The translations under genes and the position numbers were made by a program. 64,000 nt of DNA from Scyliorhinus canicula (Eukaryota). Where the stretch lies: positions 125,925,256 to 125,989,255 of the forward strand of contig NC_052149.1 of NCBI RefSeq assembly GCF_902713615.1, given 5' to 3'. The notes below the pieces were generated by a model. The model worked only from the letters and a program-made list of their open reading frames with translations, did not search any database and was not told the DNA's origin. How positions within the stretch are numbered: the first letter of the stretch is position 1; every line of letters begins with the position of its first letter. This document shows positions 1 to 55,400 of this stretch, piece after piece.

Positions 1-1008
1 AGGAGTTGAATTCTGATCTGCCTGGGGCAGAGTCCACAATTCTCCCACATTCAGATGGATTGAGCGCTGTGTGTCTCTTTTCTTGTTGTTTAATGGGAAT
101 TGAGTTGTTTAAGGGGTAAGTGTGAGCTGTTATTTTAGCATGTGAAATTTAACAGCTAGTATTGTATTCATATTAAACTTTTGTATTGAAATGACCAAAT
201 TCCATTTCTTCATGCAACCACTCCTGGAGGAAATAATTCTTTCCGCAGAGTCTGACAAATAAACTTAAATATTGGATCCAGTTTCAGAGCCGCTGTTGGA
301 GTCGAGTCTGGGATCATTTTAATGGATAAACTAGTTCTCCATCATATCCTTTCAAGTCACTTGGATTAAGTGAGTGGAGATGAGGCCGTAGCAGGGGGAA
401 CGGTCAGGGTGAGAGAGAGGAACGGTTTTATTGGGAACGAGGATATCAAAGGTGGAGGTGAGGGTGAGGTTGGGTAAATCAGTGGCTGCAGAAATGTTGT
501 GGTGATCGGAGGGCCAGAGACAGATAGTTGGCATTTTGAAGGTGCCGTTGGAAGTGAAATGGGGAATAGGTTTTTCCAGGGATGGATACAGAAGGGGGTA
601 GGGTTGGGGTGTGGAAGGGGGATGTGGGTGGGGAGTGATACAAGGACGTGATCAGAGATGGTCTTATCTGTGATTGAAACTATGGGAATAGTGAGACCAC
701 GTGAGGTGGTTTGGTCAAGGGGGAGGTGGGGAATATGGGTTGGAGAATTGTGATTGTGATGATTTAATCCCAGAAACTTTCAGTCTCTTTTCTGATTTGA
801 ATCTTTCAACTCAGATATTCCAGATAAAACTGATCATTTTAAAATGATTGATAATTGTCTTTGAATCCAAGCTTCTGCCAATGTGTCATTGATTGACAGG
901 CCAACTAGCCAATCATGACAATCACTTGCTGAAATGTAGCCAATCAGCTGATGGGGAGGAGGAACATTTCCAAAGCACACACGAGACACAGACTGAATAT
1001 TCTTAATG

Positions 1009-1512: not shown

Positions 1513-1841
1513 CTACGCACATTCTGATCTCCTGATGCTCTTGCTGAGGGCAGAGGAGAGGCTCACGTGGGTGAGGGCACAGGAGAAGCTGGCGTTGGAC
1601 TCCCAGGCAGAGTCAGAGAGGGTCAGCAGGCTGCTGACACTGTAGGTGTTGTCCGAAGCTCGCAGGTAGTTGCTGGTCTGAACCCCGTCTGAAATGGCTG
1701 CACCATCCTTCTTCCACTCCACCACCAGCTCATCGGGATAGAAGTGATTGGCAAGGCACACCAGGGTGGCAGTGTTCTTGGTCTTGACCTCCTCCAGGGA
1801 GGGGGGCAGCAGGGTGAGTGTGGGTTGTGAATTCTCACGGC
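1513..1841 (-). CDS. IGKC: Ig kappa-type light chain constant exon, cluster 1
   Basis: 329 nt after a polypyrimidine tttcAG acceptor, phase 1. Reads (S)RENSQPTLTLLPPSLEEVKTKNTATLVCLANHFYPDELVVEWKKDG...YSVSSLLTL...FSCALTH...RSECA*. Canonical C1-set Cys/Trp/Cys plus penultimate Cys. Confidence 0.95.
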
Positions 1842-5822: not shown

Positions 5823-6928
5823 AGCACTGAAATTGCTAATAGTATAAGTTTTTAAAGACACAATGTCCCTTCAAAAGACTGTTAACCGGTCAGGAAGCTC
5901 GAACTATTGATCAGAATTTTTGGGGGAACAGGTTGAACATTAACAAACCACACACAGAGCGGGAGAACTTTATCCCAGAACATTGGAGCAGACTTGGAGC
6001 AACACATTTCACAAAGGATTCTGATCGGAGGTCAGTACAGAAGTTTCTAGATTTAATTTCAAACCCTGCCGCCCAGCACTGGGCTGAGGTCAAGGGTGAG
6101 GCTACAATTAGCCTCAGTGTCCGGGGGTCAGACAGGGTCATTGCTCCTAATAACCCCCTGCTCTTTGGAGGCTGAGAGTGTGCGAACAATGGGCGAGGGT
6201 CAGGATCAGGAATCTCCAAAGTTAAAGAAAGATTTGCATCTCTGTAGCATCTGAACCACCTGATGTTGTCCTCAAATGTTTTGCAGCCAATTGTGCACAG
6301 CAAGATCCAAAACAGCAATGAGTCAATGAGCATTTGGAGGAATTTTGAATCAGGGATAAATATCGGACTGAACTCGACCCAAAGAGAAAGTAACTGAGAG
6401 TCTCCCCAAAAGCCTGGAACACTGAAGCCACTGGATTGTGAGCCCTGCTGGACCTGTTTGTCATCAGAACTTTGCTAAGAGATAAGCAGGGAGTGGAGAG
6501 AGCAGAGTTAAAGCTGGGGGAAGTGGGACCTCGGTGTCTCACTGTGCTGCTGCTGCTGCTGTGATCAGTTATATCAGAGAGTGTGACAGGGAGCCAGAGC
6601 TCACATCAAACTCTGCCCGTGTCTGTCACACGCAGACAGACAGGAGTCTAGTGAGTGATCTCACTCCATGGTCCAGGAATGTGAACACAGTCTGCAAACG
6701 TCCAGATCTCCTCCACACGGTGGGTAAAAGCTGCTTACTTATATCTTGCTGCTTAAAGGGGGGAATGGAACTAAAGAAATACAGCTGGGCACCCTGTTCT
6801 ACAGTGTTCTTCAATGAACCATTTCATTCACTGCAGCTCCCCACTAACACCTTCAACTATTCAGCATTTGTGTTTGAGAAAGTTTCAGTATTGAAAGGGT
6901 TAATAACGGAGGATTGGGGTTTACTTAC

Positions 6929-6963
6929 TCAGTCTGAGCTTGGTTCCTTTACCGAACGTAAGC
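6929..6963 (-). CDS. IGKJ: Ig kappa-type J segment, cluster 1
   Basis: Encodes LTFGKGTKLRL(S) with the FGxG motif, followed by a GTAAGT donor; nucleotide-identical to J2. Confidence 0.95.
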
Positions 6964-7002
6964 CACACTGACAGCTTCCAGTGCAGGGGCTGTACAAGAA
7001 CC
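6964..7002 (+). other. 23-bp-spacer RSS of J1
   Basis: CACACTG (6964-6970), 23 nt spacer, ACAAGAACC (6994-7002); nonamer has one mismatch to consensus. Confidence 0.9.
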
Positions 7003-7358
7003 TCTGCTCTCTGCTTCACTCACTCACTCTCACCCTCTCTCTGTCTCTCACTGTGTCTCTCACTCACTACTGTCTTTCTCTCTCACTCTTTCGCTCGCTC
7101 TGTTTCTCTCAATGTCTCTGTGTTTGTTGGGAGAGTTGAGAATTCTACTTTTCGACAATAAATCTTTCAGCTGCTCTTCATATGTGGACATGGAGAGTAA
7201 GATGGAAACTTGAGGCCTTCAGTGAGCTGTGGACACCACAGGGACTGGAGTGTGTAGTGGACGGTGAGAATCATTTGTTCAGTTTCCTTTTTTGTGTTTA
7301 TTCTCTATTACATAAAACTGGGATGTGTCAGTACAGGAGGTGGGGCTGTGTGTATTGG

Positions 7359-7386
7359 GGTTTTTGTAAGGCTCTGTGTCACTGTG
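7359..7386 (-). other. 12-bp-spacer RSS of V1
   Basis: Consensus CACAGTG + 12 nt + ACAAAAACC on the minus strand. Confidence 0.95.
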
Positions 7387-7684
7387 AGAGGCCAGCTGCT
7401 TCCTTGCTGACAGTAATAATCAGCGACATCCTCATTCTGCACATTGCTGATTTTCAGGGTGTATTGTGTTCCAGATCCACTGCCGGTGAATCGGTCGGAT
7501 ATTCCTGTGAATCGAGTTGCTGCATTGTAGATCAGCAGAGCCGGTTTCTGACCTTCTCGCTGTTGATACCAATGAACATAACTGCTAACAGATTGACTGG
7601 CCGTACAGGTGATGGTCGCAGTCTGGCCCAGGCTCAATGACAACACCGGGGGAGACTGGGTCATGATGATGTCTCCACTGATAC
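7387..7684 (-). CDS. IGKV: Ig kappa-type V exon, cluster 1 (germline, unjoined)
   Basis: 298 nt after an AG acceptor: [42 protein letters not shown]...[10 protein letters not shown]; conserved Cys23, Trp, YYC; V-12/J-23 RSS polarity is kappa-like. Confidence 0.95.
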
Positions 7685-7870
7685 CTGAGGGGTAATAGAG
7701 AAACAGAATGAAGTAAGAACTGTCACAGAAAGAGCCTGTACAATGAGATATTGTTGGAGACACTGACTGTTCCTCTGCTTTCAGCATTTTCCCTTCAATC
7801 ACAAGTCAGTAGAATTGGATTGAAATGGAGAGCAGGAAAATATTCAAGGTGGAAGGAGAGAGATTTGTAC

Positions 7871-7919
7871 CTGCGATGCAGAATGCCAGAGGCCAGATCA
7901 GCTGGATGGCTGAAATCAT
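7871..7919 (-). CDS. IGKV: Leader exon, cluster 1
   Basis: ATG at 7919, MISAIQLIWPLAFCIA(G), GT donor, 186-nt intron to V. Confidence 0.9.
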
Positions 7920-7979
7920 GGTGTCTGCTCCTGTCCCTGTGCCTGGTTACTGATAAACTCTCCCTTCACTGGGCTCTGC

Positions 7980-8075
7980 TTTATAAAGCTGCAGCCTGTG
8001 AGAGTCTGACTGCCCGTTCCTCAGTATGTAAATGGTATGAGGCAGAGACACCACGTCAGCACCTTCACTTCCTCT
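7980..8075 (-). promoter_or_regulatory. V promoter, cluster 1: TATAAA, variant octamer ATTTACAT, Ets/PU.1 box
   Basis: TATAAA (7980-7985), ATTTACAT (8026-8033) and AGAGGAAGTG (8066-8075) on the minus strand; same spacing in cluster 2. Confidence 0.75.
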
Positions 8076-8390
8076 TCTTCTCTCTCACTCACTCCCTCCC
8101 TCAGTATCTGTCCCTCAGTCTCTGCTCTCTCTCTCTCTCTTCCTGTCTCTTTTCTCCTCTGTGTCAGTTTCCCAGTTTCTGCCTCTGACTCTCCCTGTCT
8201 CTGACTGTCTCTATGTATTCTCTTTCCTTTCTCTCTCTCTTTGTCCATCTCTCTCACTCTTTCTTTCTCTCTCTCTCTCTCAGTATCCCTCTATCTCTCT
8301 GTACCATTCTCCATCGTCCTGCAATTCTCCAACTGATCTCTGTAACTGGTGTCATTATTGGAGATTGGAACACTTTAAGTACTTGTGCAG

Positions 8391-13358: not shown

Positions 13359-14704
13359 ATGTTTCCCGGGTGCCTGTGACCTATTACCCCAGACCTCACT
13401 GAACTGTAACCCCTTACCTCACTGACCCACAATCTCTGTCCTCCAATTACCTTCATGGAAGCGTCATTCCTCCCTACCCTTGTGTTCTGCTGCAGACTCA
13501 CATTGTCTCCCTCACCCCTCCATCTTCTGACTCTGGTCTCCTGCCCATCGCTGTTTGCTTCATCCCACCATTGGCAGCAGAGCTTTCAGATGCCTAGGGC
13601 CTGCTCTCTGAACTCTGACCTTTAATCTCTCCCCCTCTCCTGGCTTCTCTTTTCTCCATCAAACTCCATCTGTTCACGTCAGCCTTTTATCAATCTTCCT
13701 AAGGTCCCCCCAACCCCTTCCCCGCTACTCTTACTGCCTCTCTGTGAAATATCCTGGGATGTTTTTACACATTAAGGCGCTAGATAAATTCAGGTTGCGA
13801 GTAGATTCCGGGTGAGGACAAAAGTGGACAAAATGGTGATGGATCTTGCAGTCAAATATCCTGCTGAGAGGGTCCAGAATGCCACACACAAAATAGGGAA
13901 GTAGGGTGGAGTTTTAAAAATGTTTCCATTTCTGGGACTTGGGGGTCACGATCCAGAACAGCTTTCATTGCCCATCCCTAATTCTCCTTGGAAAGGTGGT
14001 TGAACCGCTGCAGGCCCTTTGGTGTAGGAACATCCACTGTGCAGTTAGGGAGGGAGTTCCAGGACTTTGACCCAGTGACAGTGAAGGAACGGCGATATAT
14101 TTCCAAGTCAGAATGGTGAGTAACTTGGAGGGAAACTTACAGATGATGATGCTCCACTTATCTGCTGCCCTTGTCTCTCTAGATGTCTCTCTTTGATGTA
14201 CCATCAATCGGACTCGAGTCGTGAAGAAGTTCCAAATATCAGGCTTTAATGAACTAGTTGTGTGCCCGGCAGTCGACTTACAGAGAAAGGCCGACTGTCG
14301 GCTGTTACGGGTTCTTATACCCCGCCTCGTAGGAGGGGCTACCAGCCTCTCGGCCAATCGGCGAGCAGTCACATGACTAGCCTCAGCCACTTGGCAGAGA
14401 GGCACATGACCTGCCTGAGCCAATGGGCAGCGAGTCCTCTGCACCAATGGCAGCACTGCTCTGAGGTAGCATAAACCTCCTAGTCATACCACCACATTCA
14501 CCCCTTGTGGAGAAAGAAGCCGGAGGGGGGGAGAGAGGAGGAGCAAGAAAAGCGGGGGTGGGGGGGGGGTGGGGGGGGTGCGGTTGTGGGGGGGGGGTGG
14601 GGGCGTCGGACTGGTGGTCTGACTAGAGAGAATGAGGTGTACCGGGATATCTGGTGGCTGCCCACTGGCCCGCGACAATGTGCAACAGAACAGCAATACA
14701 CAAT

Positions 14705-18702: not shown

Positions 18703-19028
18703 TTCAAATTTCTAGTTCATTAAATTGATGTGCCATCAATCGGACTCGAGTCGTGAAGAAGTTCCAAATATCAGGCTTTAATTAACTAGTTGTGTGCCCG
18801 GCAGTCGACTTACAGAGAAAGGCCGACTGCTGGCTGTTACGGGTTCTTATACCCCGCCTCGTAGGAGGGGCTACCGGCCTCTCGGCCAATCGGCGAGCAG
18901 TCACATGACTAGCCTCAGCCAATTGGCAGAGAGGTACATGACCTGCCTGAGCCAATGGGCAGCGAGACCTCTGCACCAATGGCAGCACTGCTCTGAGGTA
19001 CCGTAAACCTCCTAGTCATACCACCACA

Positions 19029-22000
19029 GATGGTAGAGGTCATGAGTTTGGAAGGTGTTGCCTGAGTAAACTTGGTGAGTTTCTGCAGGGCATCTTGTAG
19101 ATGGTACACACAGCAGCTACTGTGCGTCGGTGGTGGAGGGAGTGATTGTTTTATGGAAGGGCTGTTAATCAAGCGGCTACTTTGTCCTGGATGGTGTCGA
19201 GCTTCTTGAGTGTTGTTAGAGCTGCACGCACCCAGGCAAGTAGAGAGTATCACACTCCTGACTTGTGCCTTTTGGTATCTCTCACCTCACCTCTGGCATT
19301 CAGCTCTTTTGTCCATGTTTGAACCAAGGCTGTTGTAAATGTCCTTCCTGTTTATTCCTTTACTTCCCATTTCTTTTATTTTTGCTATTACATCTTTAAT
19401 CCATAGATAACTTATGGACCTGTCTCTTTAAGGAAAGTGGCCTGTGCCTTTAATTTGAACAGAAGAATCCAGAAAAGACTGCTGATTGCAGATTGGCCAG
19501 TGTCAGTGATGACTCGATTTGAACGATTTGGCTGGTGGCCAATAAATGACCCCAAAAGGCCGTGTTCTGCCCGGTAACAGGTTGTGCTTGGATCTGTTCC
19601 CACTGAAATGGCTCAGAGACCTAATGTGGTTTCAGTTTCGCGATGGAAGGTGAGAGATAAAACTTATCTTTTTTGCACTTTGTTCCAGAAATAACCACCA
19701 AATTCTCACCAAATGCCCACTTTGGGAATCAGCTCTCGCTGCAGAAAAGGCTGATGTGAAGCCAGGCGCCTGGGCTGGAAAAGCTGTGAGTAAGGTCTAC
19801 TGCTGAACGGCAAAGAAGATAATTGCGAGCTGTAGTTCAGCAACGTTAATCCACACTCATACTGTGAAGAAAGTACATTAAAGAACTCATCATCTGAAGC
19901 AAGGACTCTTATCTTTTGATCTGAAGGCTTATTATTGTAACTCCTTTCCACCCCTCTGTGCTTGTTTGTCTAGTGTGTGTGGGTGGAGGGTGGGACGGTT
20001 AAAGGAGGAGTCCGGTGCTAACATGTCATTAAGCAACTGTGTTTACTGCATATTTCATATTTGTCCTTGTTATAAATAAAAAGTAATTGTGAATAAACTT
20101 ACAAACCTGGTGACTGTAATTATCAGATAGCCAAAGGCCAAATGTTTTGGGTATCTTTATGAGAATTATTGGTTAATTCACTTGTGTTGTGACTCTGGGC
20201 ATGTGGGGCTGGAATTGACCGTGCACTTGCCCAGTGTAACGAGGTCAGGAGCTGAATGACCCTGGCACAACCCAAACTGGGCGTCTGTGAGCAGGTTATT
20301 GTGAAGTAAGTACCACTTGATAGCACTGTTGATGACCCCTTCCATCAATTGACTGATGATTGAGAGTAGACTGATGGGGAGGTAATTGTCCTATTTCTTG
20401 TGGGCTGGATATGCCTGGGCAAGTTTCCACATTGCTGTACTGGAACAGCTTGGCTAGGGGTGCGGCAAGTTCTTGAGCACAAGTCGTCAGTACTATTGCT
20501 GGAATATTTACAGGGCACACAGCCTGTGCAGTATCCAGGGCCTTCAGCCATTTCTTGATATCACGTGGAGTGAATCGAATTGGGTGAAGATTGATATCTG
20601 TGATGCTGCAGACCTCTGGAGGAGACCGAGACGGATCATCCACTCGGCCCTTCTGGCTGAACATTATTGCGAATGTTTGATCCTTGTTTTTTGCACAGAT
20701 GTGCTGAGTTCCCACATCATTAAGGGTGGAGATATTTTGGAACCTCCTCCTCCAGCGGGATGTTTAATTATCCACCACCATTAACAACTGGATGTGGCAG
20801 GACTGTAGAGCTTAAATATGATCCATTGGTTGTGGGATCGCTTAGCTCTGTCTGTCACTTGCTGCGTGTGCTGTTTGGTAGCTTCCCCAGGTTGACACCC
20901 CATTTTTCGGTCTGCCTGGTGCTGCTCCTTGTGTCCTCCTGCACTCTTCATTGAACCAGGGTTGACCCCCTGGGTTGGTGATAATGGTAGAGTGAGGAAT
21001 ATGTTGGGCCTTGAGGTAACAGACTGTGGTTGAATACAATTCTGTTGCTGCTGATGGCCCACAGCATCTCACGGGTGCCCAATCTTGAGTTGCTTGATCC
21101 CTTTGAAGTCTATCCCATTTTGCATGGCAGTAGTGCCACACATGATGCAGGGTTCCTCAATGTGAAGATGGGACTTTATCCCTGCGTGTGGTGGTCACTC
21201 CTACCAATACTGTCATGGACAGATGCATCCGTAGCAGGCAGGTTGGTGAGGATGAGGTCAAGTATGTTTGTCCCTCTTGTTGGTTCCCTCACCACCTGCT
21301 GCAGTCCCAGTCAAGCAGCTATGTCCTTTATGACTCTGGCCAGCTCGGTCTGTGGTGGTACTACTGAGCCACTCTTGGTGATGGACATTGAACGTCCCAC
21401 CCAGAAAACAATTGCCCCATTTCCTCAGTGCTACTTCCAATTAGTGTTCAACATGGTGGAGTTCTGATTCATAAACTGCAGTTGATGGTAACCAGCAGGA
21501 GGTTTCCTTGTCCATGTTTGACCTGGTACCATGAAGCTACATGGAGTCTGGATTCAATGTTGAGGAATCTCAGGGCAATTCCCGACAGTATTACCACTGT
21601 GTCACCACCTCTGCTGGGTCTGTCCTGCCGGTGAGACAGGACATACCCAGGGATGGTGATGGTGGTGTCTGGGACATTATCTGTAAGGTATGATTCTGTG
21701 GGTGTGACTATGTCAGGCTGTTGCTGACTAGTCTGTGGGACAGCTCTCCCAATTCTAACACAAGCCCCCAGATATCAGGAAGGAGGACTTTGCAGGGTCG
21801 ACAGGGCTGGGTTTGCCGTTGTTGTTTCCGGGGTCTATGTCGATGCCGGGAGGTCTGTTCGGTTTCATTCCTTTTAGAATTTTCAGCAGTTTGATACAAC
21901 TGAGTGGCTATTTCAGAGTCAACCACATTGCTGTGGGTCTGGAGTCACATGTAGGCCAGACCAGGTAAGGACGGCAGATTCCCTTCTCTAAAGGACATTA

Positions 22001-22060
22001 GTGAACCAGATGGGTACGTGCGACAATCGACAATGTTTCATGGTCACCATTACTGAGACG
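19029..22060 (-). mobile_element. Decayed CR1/L2-clade LINE (3' end at ~13940-14193, split by the Gypsy)
   Basis: FSQKGRVDDPSR..., LAAPLAKLFQYS fragments; mirror copy at 40535-43880. Confidence 0.7.
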
Positions 22061-22563
22061 AGCTTTTAATTCCAGATTTATTCATTGAATTTAAATTCCA
22101 CCAGCTGCCATGGTGGGATTTGAACCTGTGACCAGAGCATTAGCCTGGGCCTCTGGATTACTAGTCCAGTGACATTACCACTACACCACGGCCTCCCCCA
22201 CATTGTGCTGTGGGGCTCCATGGAACTGTATCCCAGCATGAAGTGTCCCTCAGGAGGGGAGAGGGAATGTTCGGAGCCCTGAGCTCCATTTCCCAGCCCA
22301 GGCATTTTGTCTTCCAACGAATGAATGAGATGCCAATTTGGAGCCAGGTTAGGGACAGTCTCGTGCTGTGGACCCAGGCCTACAAGAGGCAATTGGAGAT
22401 ATCCCTGAAAGGGAAAGATTGGCTGGGTTATGGGGATAGAGAGGGGGAGTGGGACTAATTGGGTAAGTCACAGCATGATGGGCAGAATGGCCTCCTTCTG
22501 TGCTGGAAGATTCGAGGTAGTGGACATGGTTCACAGTTTTCTCCCGTGTCAGTAACAAACATC

Positions 22564-22593
22564 CAGCTGCTCTGAGCCCCTTCTTTCACTTCC
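22564..22593 (-). promoter_or_regulatory. Candidate enhancer core: EICE (GGAAGTGAAA) plus E-box CAGCTG, left arm
   Basis: TTTCACTTCC at 22584-22593 and CAGCTG at 22564-22569, inside a ~98% identical inverted block. Confidence 0.45.
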
Positions 22594-23759
22594 TCTGTTG
22601 GTTACGTTTCAATATTCCGATCTGACAGTTTTGCTGTTATTTTTTACACTGGGGGTTTCTGCTGTGGTCTGAATCTCTAACAATAACTGTCCAATCAGTG
22701 ACAAGAACAGCAGCTAAGAGCAGTCAGGACTGAGGAGCCAGGCTCACTGGGAAACACATTGGGAAGATCAAAGCCATCGTCATCAGCTCCCGATACAAAC
22801 TCCATCCCTCTCCCTGAGCTCTGTCTGCTGCTCAACCAGACTCTTTACAACATTGGCCTCATCTCTCTGTTCCTCCACAATTCCCAGCTTCCCACCATTT
22901 AGAAATGACTCTGATTTCTCTTTCTTTGGTCCAAAGTGGATGATTTCACAGCCCCACATTGATCTCCATCTGCCATTGTCTTCAGTCCCCATCACAATCT
23001 CTGTTCCCCAGACACTGATTCCATTCCTCTCCCTGGGCCTGTCTGACTCTGAACCACACAGTTCACAGCCATGGTGTCCTATTTGACCCTGAGATGACCT
23101 TCCCACCACATTATCCGCTCCATCACTAAGACGGCCTATTTCTCCCTCGGTAACATCGCCCGAGTCCGTCCTGCCTCACATCATCTGCTGCTGAGAATCT
23201 CCTCCATGTCTTTGTTCCCTCTAAACGTGACTATTCCAATGCTGTCCTGGCCGGCCTCACACCTACCACCCTCCGTAAACATCAGCTGATCCAAAACTCT
23301 GCTGCCTGGATCTGAACTCACACCAAATCCCGTTCACCCATCACCCCCTCTGCTCACTGACCTACACTGACTCCCGGTCCAGCAATGCCTCGATTTTAAA
23401 TTCTCATCCTTGTTCTCAAACCCCTCCCTGTCCTCCACCCTCCCTATCTCTGTAACCTCCTCCAAGCTGCCTAACTTAGTGTGGTCAGTAACTTGGATAT
23501 ATGTCTCTCTATTCCTTTATCCAAGTCATTGAGAAATACAGTGAAAAGCTGAGGCTCCAGCTCAGATCCCTGGGGACATCACTATTCACATCTTGCTGAT
23601 TGGAGTACACACACATTATCCCCACTCCCTGTCTCCTACCTCCTAACTAATTCCTTATCCATGGAAAATGATTTCCTCAAATTCCATATGCTTCCAATTT
23701 TATTAACAGTCTCTCATGTGGAACCTTCTCGATTGTCTTCTGGCAATCCATACCAAAGA

Positions 23760-30588: not shown

Positions 30589-31088
30589 NNNNNNNNNNNN
30601 NNNNNNNNNNNNNNNNNNNNNNNNNNNNNNNNNNNNNNNNNNNNNNNNNNNNNNNNNNNNNNNNNNNNNNNNNNNNNNNNNNNNNNNNNNNNNNNNNNNN
30701 NNNNNNNNNNNNNNNNNNNNNNNNNNNNNNNNNNNNNNNNNNNNNNNNNNNNNNNNNNNNNNNNNNNNNNNNNNNNNNNNNNNNNNNNNNNNNNNNNNNN
30801 NNNNNNNNNNNNNNNNNNNNNNNNNNNNNNNNNNNNNNNNNNNNNNNNNNNNNNNNNNNNNNNNNNNNNNNNNNNNNNNNNNNNNNNNNNNNNNNNNNNN
30901 NNNNNNNNNNNNNNNNNNNNNNNNNNNNNNNNNNNNNNNNNNNNNNNNNNNNNNNNNNNNNNNNNNNNNNNNNNNNNNNNNNNNNNNNNNNNNNNNNNNN
31001 NNNNNNNNNNNNNNNNNNNNNNNNNNNNNNNNNNNNNNNNNNNNNNNNNNNNNNNNNNNNNNNNNNNNNNNNNNNNNNNNNNNNNNNN
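30589..31088. other. Assembly gap (500 N)
   Basis: Run of exactly 500 N; true length and orientation of the join unknown. Confidence 1.
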
Positions 31089-38490: not shown

Positions 38491-39685
38491 AACCATGAAG
38501 TGTGTTGCTGCTGTGTACAAAGATTGGATTGTGAAATGCATACTCACTGGAAAGGAATATTTTGTGCCAAAATAAAACTCACTGATTATCATCTGAATAA
38601 ATATTTTATTGTTGTTTTAAATGGATCTTTATACTTTGTCTGTTCGGAAATTCAGAGGGAGAGATGGAACTCAGGTCGTTACATTCTTCACTAAATATTC
38701 TTTCAGCTCCTTAATGAGAGCCCTGGAGCTGGAAAGGGAAACAGAGAAAGACATCTTTTCAAGAAGCTCATGTACACAATGTCCATTGTCCATTACCCAC
38801 TAATGACACTCCGTCTACATTCAACTCATTGTTTAAACTCCAGCCCACCTCCTGTTCCTATCCATATGTTTCAGTCAGGGAGCCAGATATGTCTAGCAGT
38901 GCAGGAGGAGGCCATTCAGCCCCTCGGGTCTGTGCTAGCTGTTTAATAGAGTCATTCACAACTAACATCTCAGTTTAATGTCTGTTATGGGGAAGTGACT
39001 GTAATCTGTGATTAGACACAAAATGAGTGAGAAATATGAACTGATCCGAGAGAGTCAGCATGGATTTAAAAAGGGTCAGACATGGTTCACTAACATGGTT
39101 ACATTTGTTAACGAGGTCACTAATGTGGCAGATATGGGAATGTCTGTGAATGTTATTTATTTCCAGAAGACATTCTAGAAGGTTCCACATGAGAGGCTGT
39201 TTGAGGAGATCTTTTTCCAAGGATAAAGAATTGGTTAAGATGTCAGAAACAGGGAATGGGGATAATGTCTGTGTGTTCCAAGCTTAAGTCTCAGCTTCTC
39301 ATTCTATTTATCAATGACTTGGATGAAAGAATAGATAACACGATTACTGACCAAAGAAAGAGAAATCAGAGTCTTTTCTAAATGGTGGGAAGCTGGGAAT
39401 TGTGGAGGAACAGAGAGATGAGGCCAATGTTGTAAAGAGTCTGGTTGAGCAGCAGACAGCTCAGGGAGAGGGATGGAGTTTGTATCGGGAGCTGAAGACG
39501 ATGGCTTTGATCTTCCCAATGTGTTTCCCAGTGAGCCTGGCTCCTCAGTCCTGACTGCTCTTAGCTGCTGTTCTTTTCACTGATTGGACAGTTATTGTTA
39601 GAGATTCAGACCACAGCAGAAACCCCCAGTGTAAAAAATAACAGCAAAGACTGTCAGATCGGAAGATTGAAACGTAACCAACAGA

Positions 39686-39715
39686 GGAAGTGAAAGAAGG
39701 GGCTCAGAGCAGCTG
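39686..39715 (+). promoter_or_regulatory. Candidate enhancer core: EICE plus E-box, right arm
   Basis: GGAAGTGAAA at 39686-39695 (context AGAGGAAGTGAAAG) and CAGCTG at 39710-39715. Confidence 0.45.
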
Positions 39716-40182
39716 GATGTTTGTTACTGACACGGGAGAAAACTGTGAACCGTGTCCACTACCTCGAATCTTCCAGCACAGAAGAAGGCCATTCTGCCCA
39801 TCGTGCTGTGATTTACCCAATTAGTCCCACTCCCCCTCTCTATCCCCATAACCCAGCAAATCTTTCCCTTTCAGGGATATCTCCAATTGCCTCTTGTAGA
39901 CCTGGGTCCACAGCACGAGACTGTCCCTAACCTGGCTCCAAATTGGCATCTCATTCATTCATTGGAAGACAAAATGCCTGGGCTGGGAAATGGAGCTCAG
40001 GGCTCCGAACATTCCCTCTCCCCTCCTGAGGGACACTTCATGCTGGGATACAGTTCCATGGAGCCCCACAGCACAATGTGGGGGAGGCCGTGGTGTAGTG
40101 GTAATGTCACTGGACTAGTAATCCAGAGGCCCAGGCTAATGCTCTGGTCACAGGTTCAAATCCCACCATGGCAGCTGGTGGA

Positions 40183-40533
40183 CACACAGAATGACCAGTA
40201 AGCACACAGAACACAGCAGCCAATCATCAGACAGGACACGACCACTATAAAGCCAGAGGGCACCAGTTTTCCCGCTCTCTCGGGATCCAGCCTCTGAGAC
40301 AGTCAGAGCTCATGAGCATAACCTGTGCAATCACCATGTGGTAGTCAGTTAGTCTGGTCAGGCTAGCATCAGGTCTCCAGTCAAGTCAGCATAGTGTCAA
40401 CCCACAGTTGAACATGTATAATAGTTTAGATGTTAAATAAAATCGTGTTGCATCTCATCAAGTGTTGGAAGTCTGTCTCTCGCTACACTGCATCAAACGC
40501 AGTCCACATTGACCCGGCCTGTCCAACACATCA
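40183..40533 (+). mobile_element. LTR fragment specific to the right arm
   Basis: CCAAT, TATAAA, AATAAA, ends ...AACACATCA; replaces ~70 bp present in the left arm; layout resembles 55682-56103. Confidence 0.6.
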
Positions 40534-40534
40534 G

Positions 40535-43500
40535 AAACCATTGTCGATTGTCGTAACATACCCGTCTGGTTCACTAATGTCCTTTAGGGAAGGGAATCTG
40601 CCGTCCTTACCTGGTCTGGCCTACATGTGACTCCAGACCCACAGCAATGTGGTTGACTCTGAAATAGCCACTCAGTTGTATCAAACCGCTGAAAATTCTA
40701 AAAGGAATGAAACCGAACAGACCACCCGACATCGACATAGACCCCGGAAACAACAACGGCAAACCCAGCCCTGTCGACCCTGCAAAGGCCTCCTTCCTGA
40801 TATCTGGGGACATGTGTCAGAATTGGGGGAGCTGTCCCACTGACTGGTCAGACACAGTCATACTTTCAGAATTATGCCTCACAGATAATGCGCGCAATTC
40901 TCCGGAAACATTTCAAAGTGTTAGCGAGCGGGAATTGCTGCAAAGTTCCCGGCTCTCAGCCCAGCGAGCCGGCAACTCTATTCCGCGTTAATTGGTCCAT
41001 TGACGAGGCCTCACGGATTTCTTGTCTCAAATAAAGGCTCGCCAGCTGATTCAACGATACCACGTTCGCTAACCCCCCACTCACAAAGTCGAACAGCACT
41101 TCACCCCTCCATCACCCCCCCCCCCCCCCCCCCCCCCCCCCCACACCCCCCTCTCCCACCACTGTGAACCATGCTTGTAGCTAACGATGCCCTCTCTGTG
41201 TCTCCTCAGGAAAAGCTCTCCCATAACCATCGGGAGAGTGCCCAGACTGGTGGACATAAGAATCGTCACCTCTTTGAGGAGCAGGCCCTGGATGTGACGG
41301 TGTAGCCGAGGACAGAATAGTCACCCACACGGAGGCTGGCGGATGCTGCTGATGTGAGGGACCACCAGAATCCACCCAGGGACCTGTCAAACGTGAGTTA
41401 TTATTCCCTTACTGACTGGTCCATCCCTCCCACTGACCACATGTCCATTCTCCCGCAAGTCCTCCAGCCGACGGCACCAGCCCTTCCCGTGAGGCCTCCT
41501 CTCCTGACTCCGAGCAGAACACCTCAGAGGAGATCTCCAAGGATACAACCTTTATAATTGTGTCACAGCTGTCATCTCCCCCTCCACCAGTGCAGATACA
41601 CACACCTCGGTGGAAAACCCATCCCCAGCCGAGGGTCCCTCAACCCCCTCTTTGCCTGTGAGTAACGATGGCTACTCACCTCCTCAGCTCCCCACAGAAG
41701 CCCTTCCGCCAGGTTCACCATTTTAAATGGAGTATTAATCGGCGTCAGCATGACCACTTGCTGGGGAGGCGGCTGAATGATGGGAGGCCGTTGGATATGG
41801 GGTCGCTCCCGTTAATTGTATGGAAATGGGGCTTACGTGGTGATAATTGGTTTCTTGCCGCGCTACGGCGAGATCCTGATTTGGCCTATGGGAGCGGCCG
41901 GTTACATCGCAAACTGTTTAGCACCTGGCACGGATCTCATTTTGTCCTCTCCCGCTGTTCACCGGCCTTGTTTGAACGAGAGCGCAAAGAGGCTGGAGAA
42001 TTGTGGCCAACGTCCCAGATAATATCACCATTCCCTGGGTATGTCCTGTCTCACCAGCAGGACAGACTCAGCAGAGGTGGGGGCAAAGTGGTATACTGTC
42101 GGGAGGAGAATGTGCAAACTCCACACAGACAGTGACCCAGGGCCGGGATTCGAACCCGGGTCCTCAGCGCCGTAGGCAGCAATGCTAACCACTGTGCCAC
42201 CGTGCTGCCCCGGGACAAACATACTTGGCCTCATCCTCAACAATCTGCATTCCACAGATACATCTGTCCATGACAGTATCGGTAGGAGTGACCACCACAC
42301 AGTCCTTGTGGAGACAAAGATCCATCTTCATATTGAGGACACACTCTATTCTGTTGTGTGGCACTACCACAGTGCTAAATGGGATAGATTCAGAACAGAT
42401 CTAGTAACTCAATACTGGGCATCCATGAGGTGGTGTGGGTCATCAGCAGCAGCAGAATTGGACTGGACCACCATCTGCAACCTCATGACTCTGCATATCT
42501 CCCACTCTACCATTATCACTGAGCCAGGGGTGCAACCCTGGTTTAATGAAGAGTGCAGGAGAGCACGCCAGGAACAACACCAGGCAATCTGGTGCATTAC
42601 AACACAGGACTACTTGTGTATCAAACAGCGCTTTCAGCTAGTGACAGACAGCTAAACGATCCCACAACCAATGGATAAGATCTAAGCTCTGCAGTCCTGC
42701 CACATCCAGCTGTGAATGCTGATGGACAATTAAACAACTCACTGGAGGAGGAGGCTCCACAAATATCCTCATCCTCAATGATGGAAGAACCCAGTGCATT
42801 CGTACTAAAGACAAGGCGGAAGCATTCACAACAATCTTCAGCCAGAAGGGCCGAGTGGATGATCCATCTCGGTCTCCTCCTGAGGTCTCCATATCACAGA
42901 TGTCAGTCTTCAGCCAATACGATTCACTCCACGTGATATTAATAAACGGCTGAAGGCACTGGATACTCAAAGCCTATGGGCCCTGACAATATTCCAGCAA
43001 TAGTATTGAAGACTTGTGCTCCAGAACTTGCTGCACCCCTAGCAAGGCAGCATTTGACCGAGTCTGGCATCAAGGAGCCCAAGCTAAACTGGAGTCAATG
43101 AGAATTGGGGGCAAAACCATCCGCTGGTTGGTCTCATACACGGCACAAAGGAAGATGGTTGCTGTAGTTGGAGGTCAATCATCTCAGCTTCAGGACATAA
43201 CTGCAGGAGTTGCTCAGGGTAGTGTCCAAAGCCCAACCATCTTCAGCTGCTTCATCAATGACCTCCCTTCCATCATAAGGTCAGAAGTGGGGATGTTTGC
43301 GGATGATTGCACAATGTTCAGCACCATTCACGACTCCTCAGATAATGAAGCAGTCCTTGTCCAAGTGCAGTAAGACTGGACAGTATCCAGAGTTGATTTG
43401 ACAAGTGGTAAGTAACATTAACACCACAGAAATGCCAGGCAATGTCCATCTCCAACAAGAGAGAATCCAACCATTGCCTCGTGACATTCAATGAATTGTG

Positions 43501-45740: not shown

Positions 45741-45836
45741 AGAGGAAGTGAAGGTGCTGACGTGGTGTCTCTGCCTCATACCATTTACATACTGAGGAAC
45801 GGGCTGTCAGACTCTCACAGGCTGCAGCTTTATAAA
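45741..45836 (+). promoter_or_regulatory. V promoter, cluster 2
   Basis: AGAGGAAGTG 45741-45750, TGACGT 45758-45763, ATTTACAT 45783-45790, TATAAA 45831-45836. Confidence 0.75.
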
Positions 45837-45896
45837 GCAGAGCCCAGTGAAGGGAGAGTTTATCAGTAACCAGGCACAGGGACAGGAGCAGACACC

Positions 45897-46837: not shown

Positions 46838-46872
46838 GCTTACGTTCGGTAAAGGAACCAAGCTCAGACTGA
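46838..46872 (+). CDS. IGKJ: Ig kappa-type J segment, cluster 2
   Basis: LTFGKGTKLRL(S), GTAAGT donor at 46873. Confidence 0.95.
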
Positions 46873-49800
46873 GTAAGTAAACCCCAATCCTCCGTTATTA
46901 ACCCTTTCAATACTGAAACTTTCTCAAACACAAATGCTGAATAGTTGAAGGTGTTAGTGAGGAGCTGCAGTGAATGAAAAGGTTCATTGAAGAACACTGT
47001 GTAGAACAGGGTGCCCAGCTGTATTTCTTTAGTTCCATTCCCCCCCTTTAAGCAGCAAGATATAAGTAAGCAGCTTTTACCCACCGTGTGGAGGAGATCT
47101 GGACGTTTGCAGACTGTGTTCACATTCCTGGACCATGGAGTGAAATCACTCACTAGACTCCTGTCAGTCTGCGTGTGACAGACACGGGCAGAGTTTGATG
47201 TGAGCTCTGGCTCCCTGTCACACTCTCTGATATAACTGATCACAGCAGCAGCAGCAGCACAGTGAGACACCGAGGTCCCACTTCCCCCAGCTTTAACTCT
47301 GCTCTCTCCACTCCCTGCTTATCTCTTAGCAAAGTTCTGATGACAAACAGGTCCAGCAGGGCTCACAATCCAGTGGCTTCAGTGTTCCAGGCTTTTGGGG
47401 AGACTCTCAGTTACTTTCTCTTTGGGTCGAGTTCAGTCCGATATTTATTCCTGATCCAATATTCCTGAAAATCCCTGGAGATATTTTTATTGTTTGATGT
47501 GATGTGTGATCTCTGGCTGAGCCAGCATTTATTGCCCATCCCTAATTGCCCTTGAACTGAGTGTCTTGCTCGGCCATTCCAGAGGACATTTCAGAGTCAA
47601 CACATTACTGCGGATCTGGAGTCACTTGTAGGCCGGACAAGGTCAGGATGGCAGGTTCCCACTTCAGACACACACATCCCATAAATTAAGTTTAAAAAAT
47701 GGCCCAAACTCCACTTTCCTGTCGGTCCCCATAACCCTTGACCCTCGTCAATCAAAAATCTGTCGAACTCAGCCTGGAATATATTCAATGTCCCAGCATG
47801 CACTGCTCTCTGGGAAAGAGAATTCCAAAAACTAACGACCCTCTGAGAGAAGAAATTCCTCCTCATCTCCACCTTAAATGGAGATCCCTTATTTTTAAAC
47901 TGTATCCACTAATTCTCGATTCCCCACGAGGGGGAAACATTCTCTCAGCATCCACCCTGTCAAGCTCTCTCGGAATCTTATATGTTTCAATAAGATCACC
48001 TCTCATTCTGCAATGAGTACAGATCCAACCAGCTCAACCTTTCCTCATCAGACATTCCATTCCTCAGTGGAATCAGTGGTTACGGGGATAGGGTGCAGGA
48101 GTGGTCCTGAGTAGGGTGCTCTTTCGAGGGCTGCATGGTGGCACAGTGGTTAGCACTGCTGCCTCACGGCGCCAAGGTCCCAGGTACGATCCCGGCTCTG
48201 GGTCACTGTCCGTGTGGAGGTTGCGCATTCTCCCTTTGTTTGCGTGAGTTCCACCCCCACAACCCCAAAATGTACAGGGTAGGTGGATTGGCCACACCAA
48301 ATTGCCTCTTAATTGGAAAAAATGAATTTGGTTTGATAAATTTATTTAATAAAAAAAGAAAATGTAGGGTGCTCTTTCCACTCAATGGGCCGAATGGCCT
48401 CCTTCTGCACTGTAAATTCTATGATTCTATGAGACCAAACCTTTCCCCAGTACACACGGTGTAGTCTCCCCAATGTGCTGTATAGATGGAGCAAGGCTTC
48501 CCTACTTTTATACTCCATCCCCCTTCAGTGGAATCAGCCCAGTGAACCTTCTCTGAACTGCTTCCAATGTCGGAATATCCATCCTTAAGTAAGGAGACCA
48601 ACACTGTGCCCAGTACTCACGGTGTAGTCTCCCCAATGTACTGTATCGATGGAACAAGACTTCCCTACTTTTATACTCCATCCCCCTTGTAATAAAGGAC
48701 AACATTCCATTGACCTTCCTCATCACTTGCTGTACCTGCAGGTTAACGTTCTGTGATTCATACACAAGGACACCCAGATCCCTCTGTACCACAGCTTTCT
48801 GCAGTCTCTCTCCATGTCAATAATATTCTGCTTTTCTATTCTTCCTAATAAAGTGGACAAGCTCACATTTCCCCACATTATACTCCATCTGTCAAATGTT
48901 CTCCCCACTCACTGAACCTATCACTATCCCTTTTCAGACTCTGTATCCTCCTCACAACTTGCTTTCCTACCTATCATTTTATCATCAGCAAATTTAGATA
49001 CAATACTCTCATTGCCTTCATCCAGCTCATTAATATAGATTGGAGAGTTAAAACCCCAAACAACAGCCATCTTCCTTTGTGCTGGGTATGACTCCAACCA
49101 GCGGAGAGTTTCCCCCTGATTCCCATTGACTCCAGTTTTGCTCAGGCTCCTTGATACCAAACTTGGTCAAATGCTGCCTCGAGGTCAAAGGGCAGTTACT
49201 CTGGCCTCACCGCTGGAGTTCAGCTCTTTTGTCCATGTTTGAACCAAGGCTATAATGAGGTCAGGAGCTGTGTGACCCTGGCAGATCCTTAACTGAGCGT
49301 CAGTGAGCAGGTTATTGCTGAGTAAGTGCTACTTGATAACACTGTCATTAACAACACCAATCATTTTGCTGATGATCGCGAGATGACTGATCGACAGTAA
49401 TTGTCCGGATTGGGTTTGTCCAGCTTTTTGTGAACAGGTCACACCTGGGTAACTGGTCGATGCCAGTTATGTATCTAAACTGGAACAGCTTGGCTGGGGG
49501 GTGTGACCTGGACACAAGACCACCAGAAATAGGGGCCGGATTTCTCCAGTGTTGCTATTCAATTATCCCACCAGCAGCACATCACCGCCAGCGGGTTTCA
49601 CAGCGGCATCGGGTGGTTGCTGTGGCAAATCCCATTGACAATCGACGGACAGATATAATCCTGCCGCCAGAGATTGGCACGCAGCCAATAATCACGCAGC
49701 TGGTGAACCGATGTTCCCGCACAGGAGCAAGGATAGATTATTCTGACCCCTGGACACAGAGGCTAATCGTAATCTCACTCTTGACCTGAGCCCAGGGCTG

Positions 49801-52473: not shown

Positions 52474-55400
52474 ATCTGGAATCTCTGAGTTTACAAGATT
52501 CAAATCAGAAAAGAGACTGAAAGTTGCTGGGATCAAATCATCACAATCACAATTCTCCAACCCATATTCCCCACCTCCCCCTTCTCCCATATTCTTCCTG
52601 TGTTTGTGTGGGTTTTCTTTGGGTGCTCCAGTTCCCCCACAGTCCAAAGATGTGCAGGTTAGGTGGATTGGCCATGCTAAATTGCCCTCAGTGTCCAAAA
52701 AGGTTAGGCGGGGTTACTGGGTTACGAAGATAGGGTAGAGGCATGGGCTTGGGTGGGGTGCTCTTTCCAAGGGCCAGTGCGGACTCGATGGGCTGAATGG
52801 CCTCCTTCTGCATTGTAAATTCTACGAATTCTATGAAGTTTATGAATTGTATATGACCTTACCACCTCACGTGGTCTCACTACTCCCAGTGTTTCAATCA
52901 CAGATAAGACCATCGCTGATCACTTCCTTATATCACTCCCCACCCACATACCCCTTCCACACCCCAACCCTACCCCCTTTCTGTATCCATCCCTGGAAAA
53001 ACCTATTCCCCAATTCACTTCCAACGACACTTTCAAAATCCCAACTATCTGTCTCTGGCCCTCCGATCACCACAACATTTCTGCAGAGACTGATTTACTC
53101 AGGGAGCAATGTAACTGGGAATGAACAGGCTCCTGTTTTGGGTGTGTTTAGTGGGGTGTTTCCCGGAGCCTGCAGTGCTGAAAATGATCCCGTTATTAAC
53201 CGGGATTCTGGGATATTTGGGCCTTGGTGAGGAAGGAGCCTCCGAGGCCGCACTGACATCCACTTCCTGCGAACTGAGCCCGTCAGTGCAGGGAGAGAAC
53301 AGGGGGTGATCTTTAAATGCTGCCCCCATCCCTCAACTCCCAACACGGCCTCCGGATTCCCCAAATTACCGATTAGGGGGTTCTCGACCCACCCCCATCC
53401 ACCCGGCAAAGGCAGGGAATGCTCGGGGCCTGATCCCAGGCTCGGACAGCCTGCTGCCCGGGCAGCATGGCAGTGCCAGCCTGACACCCTGGCAGTGCTC
53501 ATGCCATACTGGTCGTGACCCATGGACATCTTGACAGGGCCAGTGTGGCATTGCCAGGGTGACCAGATGGCATTGCCAGAGTCACCTGGTGGCACTGCCA
53601 GCATGCCAGGCTAGCACTGCTAAGCTGTCTCCAACACCCTCCACCATCCCAGAGATACTCACCTTGGCGGGGCACCTTAGTGAAGAAGCCCCTGGGACAC
53701 TTTCTGGTGCCACCACACACATGCTCCAGTACAGCAGGTGGAGGTAGGAACTCCCGAGGGAGCGGAGGGTCGGAGGCTGGGCCGGCCCCAGGGACTAGCT
53801 GCCATCCAGAAGGGTGTTGGGGTTCTGGAATGGACAGTCCCATCGATTGTGGTGATGCAGTCGCAGATTCAGCGACTACATGAGGGGTTGTTGGTGAGTA
53901 TCCAGCACCTGCAGGAGAAGGTGGAGGAATCCAACCGTGTGCAGGAGCAGGAGGTGGTGCTGCCATGGTGACACCCAGGTCCGCAGTGGAGGCCTTGGGG
54001 CGAGGGTTTCAGCCCTGGATCAGCATGTCCAAGGCTTGGGGCACACTCTGCGGCCGCTGGCCTAGGCCCAGTACAAGGCTGTCCCCTCACAGGCAGCAAT
54101 GTGCCAGACACTGCTGGACAGTGCAGTCACAGCGGGCAGAACAGGGCAGCACCACACTACCTGGGACAGTCGAACAGCAGCCGGGTCCATCCAGACCCAT
54201 TTGCCCCAGAAGATGGCCAGCAAAGGGGACCCAGGTCACAGAGTAGGAATCACAGCGGGCTGCCTCCACTCCTGATCCACCTGGAGGTAGCATTAGGACC
54301 TGTAAGGACAGAAAATTAGAAAGCAGTTTTCACAGAATCACAGTATTTACAGTGCAGAAGGCCATTCAGCCCACCGAGTCTGCACCGGCCCTTGGAAAGA
54401 TCACCCTACCTAAGCCCACACCTCCACCCTATCCCTGTAACCCCACTTGACCTTACCTGTTTTGGATACTAAGGGCAATTTAATAAATATCGCCAATTCA
54501 CCTACCCCTGCACATCTTTGAACTGTGGGAGGAAACCGGAGCACCCGGAGGAAACCCACACAGAAAAGCGGAGAATGTGCAGACTCCGCACAGACAGTGA
54601 CCCAGCCGGGAATCAAACGTGGGACCCTGGCGCTGTGAAGCCATTGTGCTAACCACTATGCTACCGTGTTCCCTTATGTTGGCATGGGTTCAGGGCACAG
54701 TTTAGTGATGGGGGCTAGGGCCCAATCTGTATATTTGTTGTCACATTAAACACCTGTTCACACTGTTACAACCTGCCTTGGTGCTCTGTCGGATGGGTGT
54801 GAGGGGTGGGCTGGTCTGGGCTGGCCAGATAGGGTGCGTGGGGCAGGGGAAATGGACGGTTGTTGGGGGTTGGCTTGGCTGAAAGGCCACAGTTCAGAAA
54901 GCGCTCACCGCTCCGGTGTCCCATTCCCCCGCCACCCACAACTACCACCGTCCCAACCTCCGCCACATCAATGATTTGATGGGACTGTGTGATGGATTGT
55001 CCAGCTCGCAGGCAGGGATCACCCAGGTGGAAAGTGCTATTGTGGCAGGAGTCAGACATTGTCAAACGATGCGGAGCACCAGAGCTCATTGCTGAGCGGG
55101 CTGTCATCATCCTCCGTCCCATTGACCAGACCCGCTGTTACTGCCAACCAGGGTCTGCATCCCGTAGTGTGGCAGGAATGTATCATAGAGGATGTTGTGG
55201 GCGGGCGAGTGGCCAGGAGGCGGGGCGGGGTGTGTGGGGGGCATTGTGGTGTCTGTGCCCTTGGTCAGACACCGTTAGTCGGTGAATCTGGAGGTGATCA
55301 GAGCGTCCCGTGTACATTGGCCCTTGTGCACACATTGTAGGGCCTCCAGTGCCTGCCCAGGCCCTATGCCCTGCCTGTCTCGCCCTCCCCTACATCCTCC

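Follow-up and report, generated by a model that had tools for sequence, protein, structure and literature searches.

Gene conversion between two inverted kappa light-chain clusters of Scyliorhinus canicula, and a candidate upstream enhancer inside one of the converted tracts

What keeps a stretch of mostly transposon-derived DNA nearly identical between two immunoglobulin (Ig) kappa light-chain clusters, and does that stretch hold a sequence that serves the clusters themselves? This question is raised by a 64,000-nt window of Scyliorhinus canicula NC_052149.1 (the window is the whole stretch of DNA analysed, and all coordinates are window positions), in which two clusters of variable (V), joining (J), and constant (C) kappa segments lie head to head. 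The initial annotation had proposed that a near-identical block upstream of both clusters carries an undescribed 5' enhancer. Our analysis shows that the window comprises two kappa clusters forming the arms of an old inverted duplication, the neutral parts of which have drifted to 70–87% identity. Within it, the block stands out as a converted tract, and its central part, a low-copy core of about 270 nt, is a candidate enhancer.

The two arms are collinear, with arm 1 running from 471 to 22931 and arm 2 from 53101 down to 39349, and 7.8 kb can be aligned between them, out of 22.5 kb in arm 1 and 13.8 kb in arm 2. The identity along this alignable DNA is a mosaic. Windows of 100 nt reach 97–100% in four places only, while the other alignable DNA remains at 70–87%. 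The four high-identity islands, in arm-1 coordinates, are as follows:

921-1820: island 1, the C exon and its 3' flank
6432-7031: island 2, J and about 500 nt of the following intron
7632-8130: island 3, leader and promoter
about 21790-22931: island 4, the block, the sole island outside gene parts

Alignment of the arms at the fourth island gave two copies of the block and one arm-specific insert:

21675-22931: shared block, arm-1 copy, with the high-identity island proper at about 21790-22931
39349-40890: shared block, arm-2 copy, with the core at about 39488-39759
40183-40535: insert of about 350 nt present in arm 2 only, replacing in the alignment about 60–75 nt of a shared short interspersed nuclear element (SINE)

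The reverse-complement match between 21700-22931 and 39349-40860 that had been reported for these arms was recovered, and a more sensitive alignment chain extended its start to 21675/40890. It consists of two segments, both in reverse complement, namely 21724-22039 against 40851-40534 (95.0% over 318 nt) and 22097-22931 against 40182-39349 (98.3% over 836 nt). In 100-nt windows, the arms are 97–100% identical across the block, bar the site of the arm-2 insert (21975-22100); this insert postdates the last homogenisation of the block. To the left, a shared long interspersed nuclear element (LINE; 20453-21274 against 43043-42212) is 79.4% identical, within the 75–85% estimated earlier, and the left flank overall lies at 79–84%. 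To the right, 577 nt present only in arm 1 (22932-23507) are followed by resumed homology, at 83.6% for 23508-23562 against 39335-39281 and 70.5% for 23600-23755 against 39281-39151. Since the homologous DNA on both sides is only 70–84% identical, the block is a true high-identity island; and since the homology of the arms continues past 22931 at 70–84%, the arms of the palindrome are longer than the high-identity block.

We have high confidence that the four islands are the product of arm-to-arm gene conversion in the old inverted pair. The block displays the expected configuration, a tract of 97–100% identity flanked on both sides by homologous and far more diverged DNA. Concerted evolution between duplicated Ig genes or between palindrome arms offers the closest comparison: the sharp steps between 97–100% and 70–87%, the collinear arms, and the islands over promoter and leader, J, and C exon are all alike. 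In contrast, one island here is located 6–14 kb from any exon and is composed mostly of transposon debris around a unique core. The near-identity had originally been linked to an enhancer kept homogeneous with each cluster, but the distribution of differences between the arms does not single out the core: none occurs in 22100-22317, which holds the SINE head and part of a LINE, seven occur in 22318-22527, and four substitutions plus two indels occur in 22528-22931. Because the SINE and LINE parts are as identical as the core, the identity of the block reflects a conversion tract and not selection on motifs. The earlier count of three differences in 180 nt is correct for 22500-22680 (22527, 22614, and one indel near 22630), and the statement that the block was duplicated and homogenised with each cluster is shown for this one pair.

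Regarding the composition of the block, we conclude with high confidence that three-quarters of it is transposon debris, contributed by a SINE, the 3' end of a LINE, and a fragment of a LINE reverse transcriptase (RT), and that this debris surrounds a unique core of about 270 nt. In arm 1 these parts are arranged as follows:

21720-22200, minus strand: tRNA-derived SINE, with a tRNA-like head at 22106-22192 (ARAGORN match) and a body running leftwards
22215-22515, plus strand: 5'-truncated LINE, comprising the end of ORF2 (...GYGDREGEWD, stop; from the translation) and the 3' tail
22520-22790, minus strand: unassigned core of low copy number, proposed as a candidate regulatory module (in arm 1, kappa sense corresponds to the minus strand)
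22791-23100, minus strand: C-terminal fragment of a LINE RT, inside which the high identity ends at 22931

ARAGORN also detected the twin tRNA-like head in arm 2 at 40087-40173, and further copies of the SINE are present in the window at 2283-2456 and 47581-47660. The plus-strand LINE gave weak tblastx and nhmmer matches to a LINE copy at 33.3 kb, and its tail matches 48385-48419 and 52787-52822. The RT fragment was identified by nhmmer (E=1.7e-10, 22975-22861) and by tblastx matches to LINE copies at 11.3, 34.0, and 48.8 kb; its firm part is 22861-23100, and a short RGMEF match suggests that it reaches 22791.

The copy number of each part was read from the contigs of four public runs belonging to four studies, at a likeness threshold of at least 80%. 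The SINE bins (21770-22163) had summed contig depths of 27,000–140,000, and depth was also raised in the bins covering the plus-strand LINE (22164-22557). The core, on the other hand, had summed depths of 21, 20, 24, and 119 in the four runs, against about 4.5–120 in neighbouring low-copy bins. The signature of many diverged copies was accordingly found for 21770-22557 (depth 1,300–140,000) and not for 22558-22951 (depth 21–119). That the core might belong to a dispersed repeat had been named beforehand as a finding that would count against an enhancer, and the contig depth bears on it directly: the core is low-copy, with a single contig spanning 22527 and 22614 in each of the four runs. At 80% similarity or more, the core is not a dispersed repeat, and no second copy beyond the arm pair was found within the window. 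The original remark that the core could not be assigned to a transposon is therefore supported for the central 270–340 nt, which are low-copy; of the block as a whole, about three-quarters is SINE and LINE.

Two possible origins of the core were considered and not supported. For a continuation of the adjacent LINE, neither nhmmer with all filters off nor tblastx, run on a tiny database, gave a significant LINE signal in 22520-22790. For descent from a V promoter, the core offers only a shared 12-mer in GA-rich context and no wider similarity. This 12-mer, AGAGGAAGTGAA, occurs in the core and also in both V-kappa promoters (8064-8075, minus strand, and 45741-45752, plus strand), where it precedes the TATA box by about 75–90 nt and has the sense orientation that it has in the core. 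Since its promoter context is GA-rich, a chance match is likelier than in random DNA.

A possible regulatory role is suggested by a set of motifs in the core, including an Ets-IRF composite element (EICE), which are present in both copies:

22584-22593, minus strand: EICE GGAAGTGAAA, within AGAGGAAGTGAAAG, arm 1; an exact GGAAnnGAAA
22564-22569: E-box CAGCTG (CASSTG type), arm 1, 14 nt from the EICE
22663-22668, plus strand: RUNX/CBF core TGTGGT, arm 1
22691-22698, plus strand: CCAAT motif CCAATCAG, arm 1, equal to the Y-box CTGATTGG on the kappa-sense strand
39686-39695, plus strand: EICE, arm 2
39710-39715: E-box, arm-2 counterpart
39610-39615: RUNX motif, arm-2 counterpart
39580-39587: Y-box, arm-2 counterpart

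Read on the kappa-sense strand, the order in both copies is CTGATTGG (Y-box, an inverted CCAAT), ACCACA (RUNX), GAGGAAGTGAAAG (Ets-IRF), and CAGCTG, and all four motifs point in the same direction relative to both clusters. The E-box, of the type bound by E proteins, keeps its 14-nt distance from the EICE in the second copy. The EICE is situated 6.1 kb from the TATA box of cluster 2 (45829) and 14.6 kb from that of cluster 1 (7987), the latter distance falling to about 9.7 kb without a Gypsy element inserted in arm 1. The initial annotation was thus accurate in placing the EICE, the CAGCTG at 14 nt, and the CCAAT box in both copies, and in its distances of about 6 kb and, without the Gypsy, about 10 kb. 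Additionally, a third exact GGAAGTGAAA lies at 550-559 (plus strand), some 1 kb past the cluster 1 C exon, where the DNA is G-rich and repeat-like, and it is not kept in the arm-2 counterpart.

The best single reading, which we adopt tentatively and at slightly less than even odds, is that the core is a candidate cluster-associated upstream enhancer acting via PU.1/IRF, E2A, and RUNX. Cooperative binding of IRF4/8 and an Ets factor of the PU.1/Spi-B type is predicted at GGAAGTGAAA, with an E protein on the CAGCTG 14 nt downstream of it and RUNX and NF-Y on the sites upstream. In B cells, the bound factors would jointly make the cluster accessible, so that it can be transcribed in germline form, rearranged, and expressed; the transposon flanks would be passengers inside the conversion tract. 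What favours a function is the company of the block: each of the other three islands covers parts of the gene with a known or suspected role, and island 4 has no non-transposon DNA apart from the core.

Such a layout has precedents. The light-chain enhancers of mouse, human, and chicken depend on PU.1-IRF4 composite sites that have E-boxes beside them, and one chicken element, the 3'Core, unites sites for PU.1 and CBF (RUNX) with an E-box (PMC10602925; PMC3972084). The shark core resembles the mammalian and avian EICE enhancers (mouse E-lambda 3-1/2-4, human and chicken Ig-lambda, and kappa 3') in that an exact GGAAnnGAAA and, at a distance of a few turns, an E2A-type E-box (CASSTG) are found beside a light-chain gene. 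In contrast, it lies 5' of V, at 6–14.6 kb, and the known elements lie 3' of C; our motif scan turned up neither an NF-kB nor a MEF2 site; and every small V-J-C cluster would have a copy of its own, where the known elements serve a large locus singly. The likeness concerns motif layout, and we do not claim homology by descent. We take mouse lambda-B to carry the same 10-mer, and the kappa 3' enhancer presumably has a similar spacing from EICE to E-box. Teleosts also have light-chain loci of the cluster type, with V-J-C clusters that are each thought to own an enhancer, as in the CL-VL intergenic enhancers of Atlantic cod. These enhancers, which we liken to the shark core by their description, are located downstream of CL, unlike the core, which is 5' of V.

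Several observations weigh against this enhancer, and most of them equally favour a serious rival, namely that the block is a neutral gene-conversion island whose motif cluster is coincidental and whose core has no regulatory role. The stretch could have been homogenised recently by chance, or the island could be self-perpetuating, since conversion needs homology. Arm identity over the SINE and LINE parts equals or even exceeds that over the core, the stretch without any difference (22100-22317) lying among them, and the right edge of the island coincides with the 577-nt indel, which would stop a conversion tract. The frequency of the EICE is near chance, with five matches to the pattern across the window where 2.74 are expected, a count that 15 of 100 shuffles reached, and every motif is short and common (CAGCTG at 0.58/kb, TGTGGT at 0.67/kb, and CCAAT at 4.2/kb). 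The motif set was moreover chosen after the fact, and the probability of about 0.01 that we estimated for the motif combination at one of three independent EICE sites is a value before correction for this free choice. The arms differ at six places in the core, all of them outside the motifs, an outcome expected by chance about half the time. A search of metagenome contigs for an EICE followed within 9–17 nt by CAGCTG returned 49 loci whose likeness to the core is limited to this pattern, and these are chance matches. Even a functional site need not activate: in vitro, PU.1:IRF4 bound sites of the form GGAA-NT-GAAA-N that have G at N1 or N3, and GT-GAAA-G is the form preferred by BLIMP1 (PMC13307996), so that GGAAGTGAAAG could repress because it also fits BLIMP1. 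Finally, contig depth gives no further copy of the core at 80% identity or more, and the core is known from this cluster pair. Against a purely neutral island, however, the other three islands all lie on functional gene parts, the non-functional DNA that can be aligned has drifted to 70–87% over more than 4 kb, and the core is the only non-transposon sequence inside the island of the block. Overall, we regard neutrality as possible but somewhat doubtful.

A decayed LINE may also reach into the core from the right, as an alignment without significance suggests, which raises the alternative that the whole core is a very old, decayed transposon, for instance the rest of the adjoining minus-strand LINE, irrespective of any later co-option. 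The 3' part of that LINE, if continued, would fall exactly on the core, similarity to the LINE can be traced to about 22791 through the RGMEF match, and further in, three LINE copies align (MAFFT) at about 45–50% identity. Moreover, a transposon more than 20% diverged is compatible with low depth, because the proven LINE fragment at 22861-23100 is likewise at baseline depth. Nevertheless, a gapped identity of 45–50% is the level of unrelated DNA, the nhmmer and tblastx searches described above gave no significant LINE signal, and the core has no further copy in the window; this origin is therefore unlikely. We consider it more improbable still that the core is a promoter, of a sterile or non-coding transcript, or a boundary element marking the edge of the cluster domain, instead of an enhancer. 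The Y-box about 100 nt from the Ets-IRF site would suit a promoter, as would the contig depth. Two runs guessed to be RNA have contigs across the core (21972-22804 and 22422-22886) at 4.6x and 5.9x the contig depth of the right flank, against ratios of 1.25–2.0 in DNA-like runs, a hint of transcription that has to be read with the fact that the library kinds (RNA or DNA) were guessed and that contig depth cannot rank expression. On the other hand, the contigs revealed no splice joint or transcript end at the core, where there is also no TATA box, open reading frame (ORF), or CpG island. Rfam returned no family anywhere in the window, and Pfam identified only RT in the ORFs of the spacer between the blocks, so that there is no gene for the core to serve as promoter.

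A wider form of the proposal, in which every kappa cluster would possess one such upstream enhancer, conserved across shark orders, is possible but somewhat doubtful. In that form the core would be the first Ig enhancer defined in cartilaginous fish, and the PU.1/IRF-plus-E-box logic of light-chain enhancers would predate the split between cartilaginous and bony vertebrates. No description of a transcriptional enhancer of a shark Ig cluster was found in the literature searched. In either form, the core offers a concrete target for understanding how many small V-J-C clusters switch on while others stay off. Should the block prove to be a conversion island only, the locus would still illustrate clearly how concerted evolution can act in patches on two inverted Ig clusters.

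The public contigs also provide information on the block in other individuals. The best-matching runs come from one organism, plus two relatives about 1% diverged (55–69% of 31-letter words), and at this distance the relatives are uninformative on deep conservation. In contigs of four runs from four studies, positions 22318, 22527, and 22614 read T, C, and C, which is the arm-2 state. It follows that the two copies are even more alike in other individuals than in this assembly, and that the arm-1 reference letters at these three positions are private variants or assembly errors.

Regarding the genes of the locus, the two clusters were recognised from ORF translations, the similarity of their products to known proteins, and the signals around them:

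1513-1838, minus strand: kappa C domain ORF, cluster 1 (ORF translation)
about 6930-6968, minus strand: J, cluster 1
7308-7802, minus strand: kappa-type V domain ORF, cluster 1 (ORF translation)
7974-8075, minus strand: V-kappa promoter, cluster 1, with the TATA box at 7987-7974, the octamer-like ATTTACAT, and AGAGGAAGTGAA at 8075-8064; the leader ATG is at 7919
45741-45842, plus strand: V-kappa promoter, cluster 2, with all the elements of cluster 1 and the TATA box at 45829
46838-46874, plus strand: J, cluster 2, the twin of the cluster 1 J

The V ORF is up to 87% identical to shark proteins annotated as 'immunoglobulin kappa light chain-like', with kappa matches in five species, namely Chiloscyllium punctatum, Scyliorhinus torazame, Cetorhinus maximus, Heterodontus francisci, and Hemiscyllium ocellatum. 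Within the gene parts, the arms are not equally similar. The approximately 500 nt of the J-C intron directly behind J (6432-6930 and 46.87–47.37 kb) are 98–100% identical. The V exon (7332-7631 against 46.1–46.4 kb) is the least similar gene part, at 84–94%, in contrast to the leader and promoter and to J with its proximal intron, which are 98–100% identical. The lower identity of the V exon fits V diversification or conversion from other clusters.

The Gypsy element that lengthens the first cluster's upstream region is present in arm 1 only, and its long terminal repeats (LTRs; 14193-14492 and 18725-19024) are 97% identical to each other. The duplication is considered old because the divergence of these LTRs (3%) exceeds that between the two blocks (1.7%). 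A false inverted duplicate created during assembly was rejected as an explanation of the arms, many insertions differing between them. Further evidence against an artefact of this kind comes from the contigs of the independent run X1, which break at 22701/22702 and 22820/22821; these are sites at which the arms differ, and breaks there are as expected if both copies of the block are real. The 16.4-kb spacer that separates the blocks has its geometric centre at 31140, about 50 nt from a 500-N assembly gap (30589-31088). Inverted homology between the halves of this spacer is confined to the first 250 nt, and the position of the gap near the centre is probably a coincidence. Elsewhere in the window, a reference-matching piece of about 200 nt at 19800-20000 reached a depth of about 12,000 in run X16 (guessed RNA), compared with about 170–1,150 in run X6 (DNA-like). 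This piece is probably a strongly expressed repeat or a transcript end, with AATAAA-like signals at about 20075-20100.

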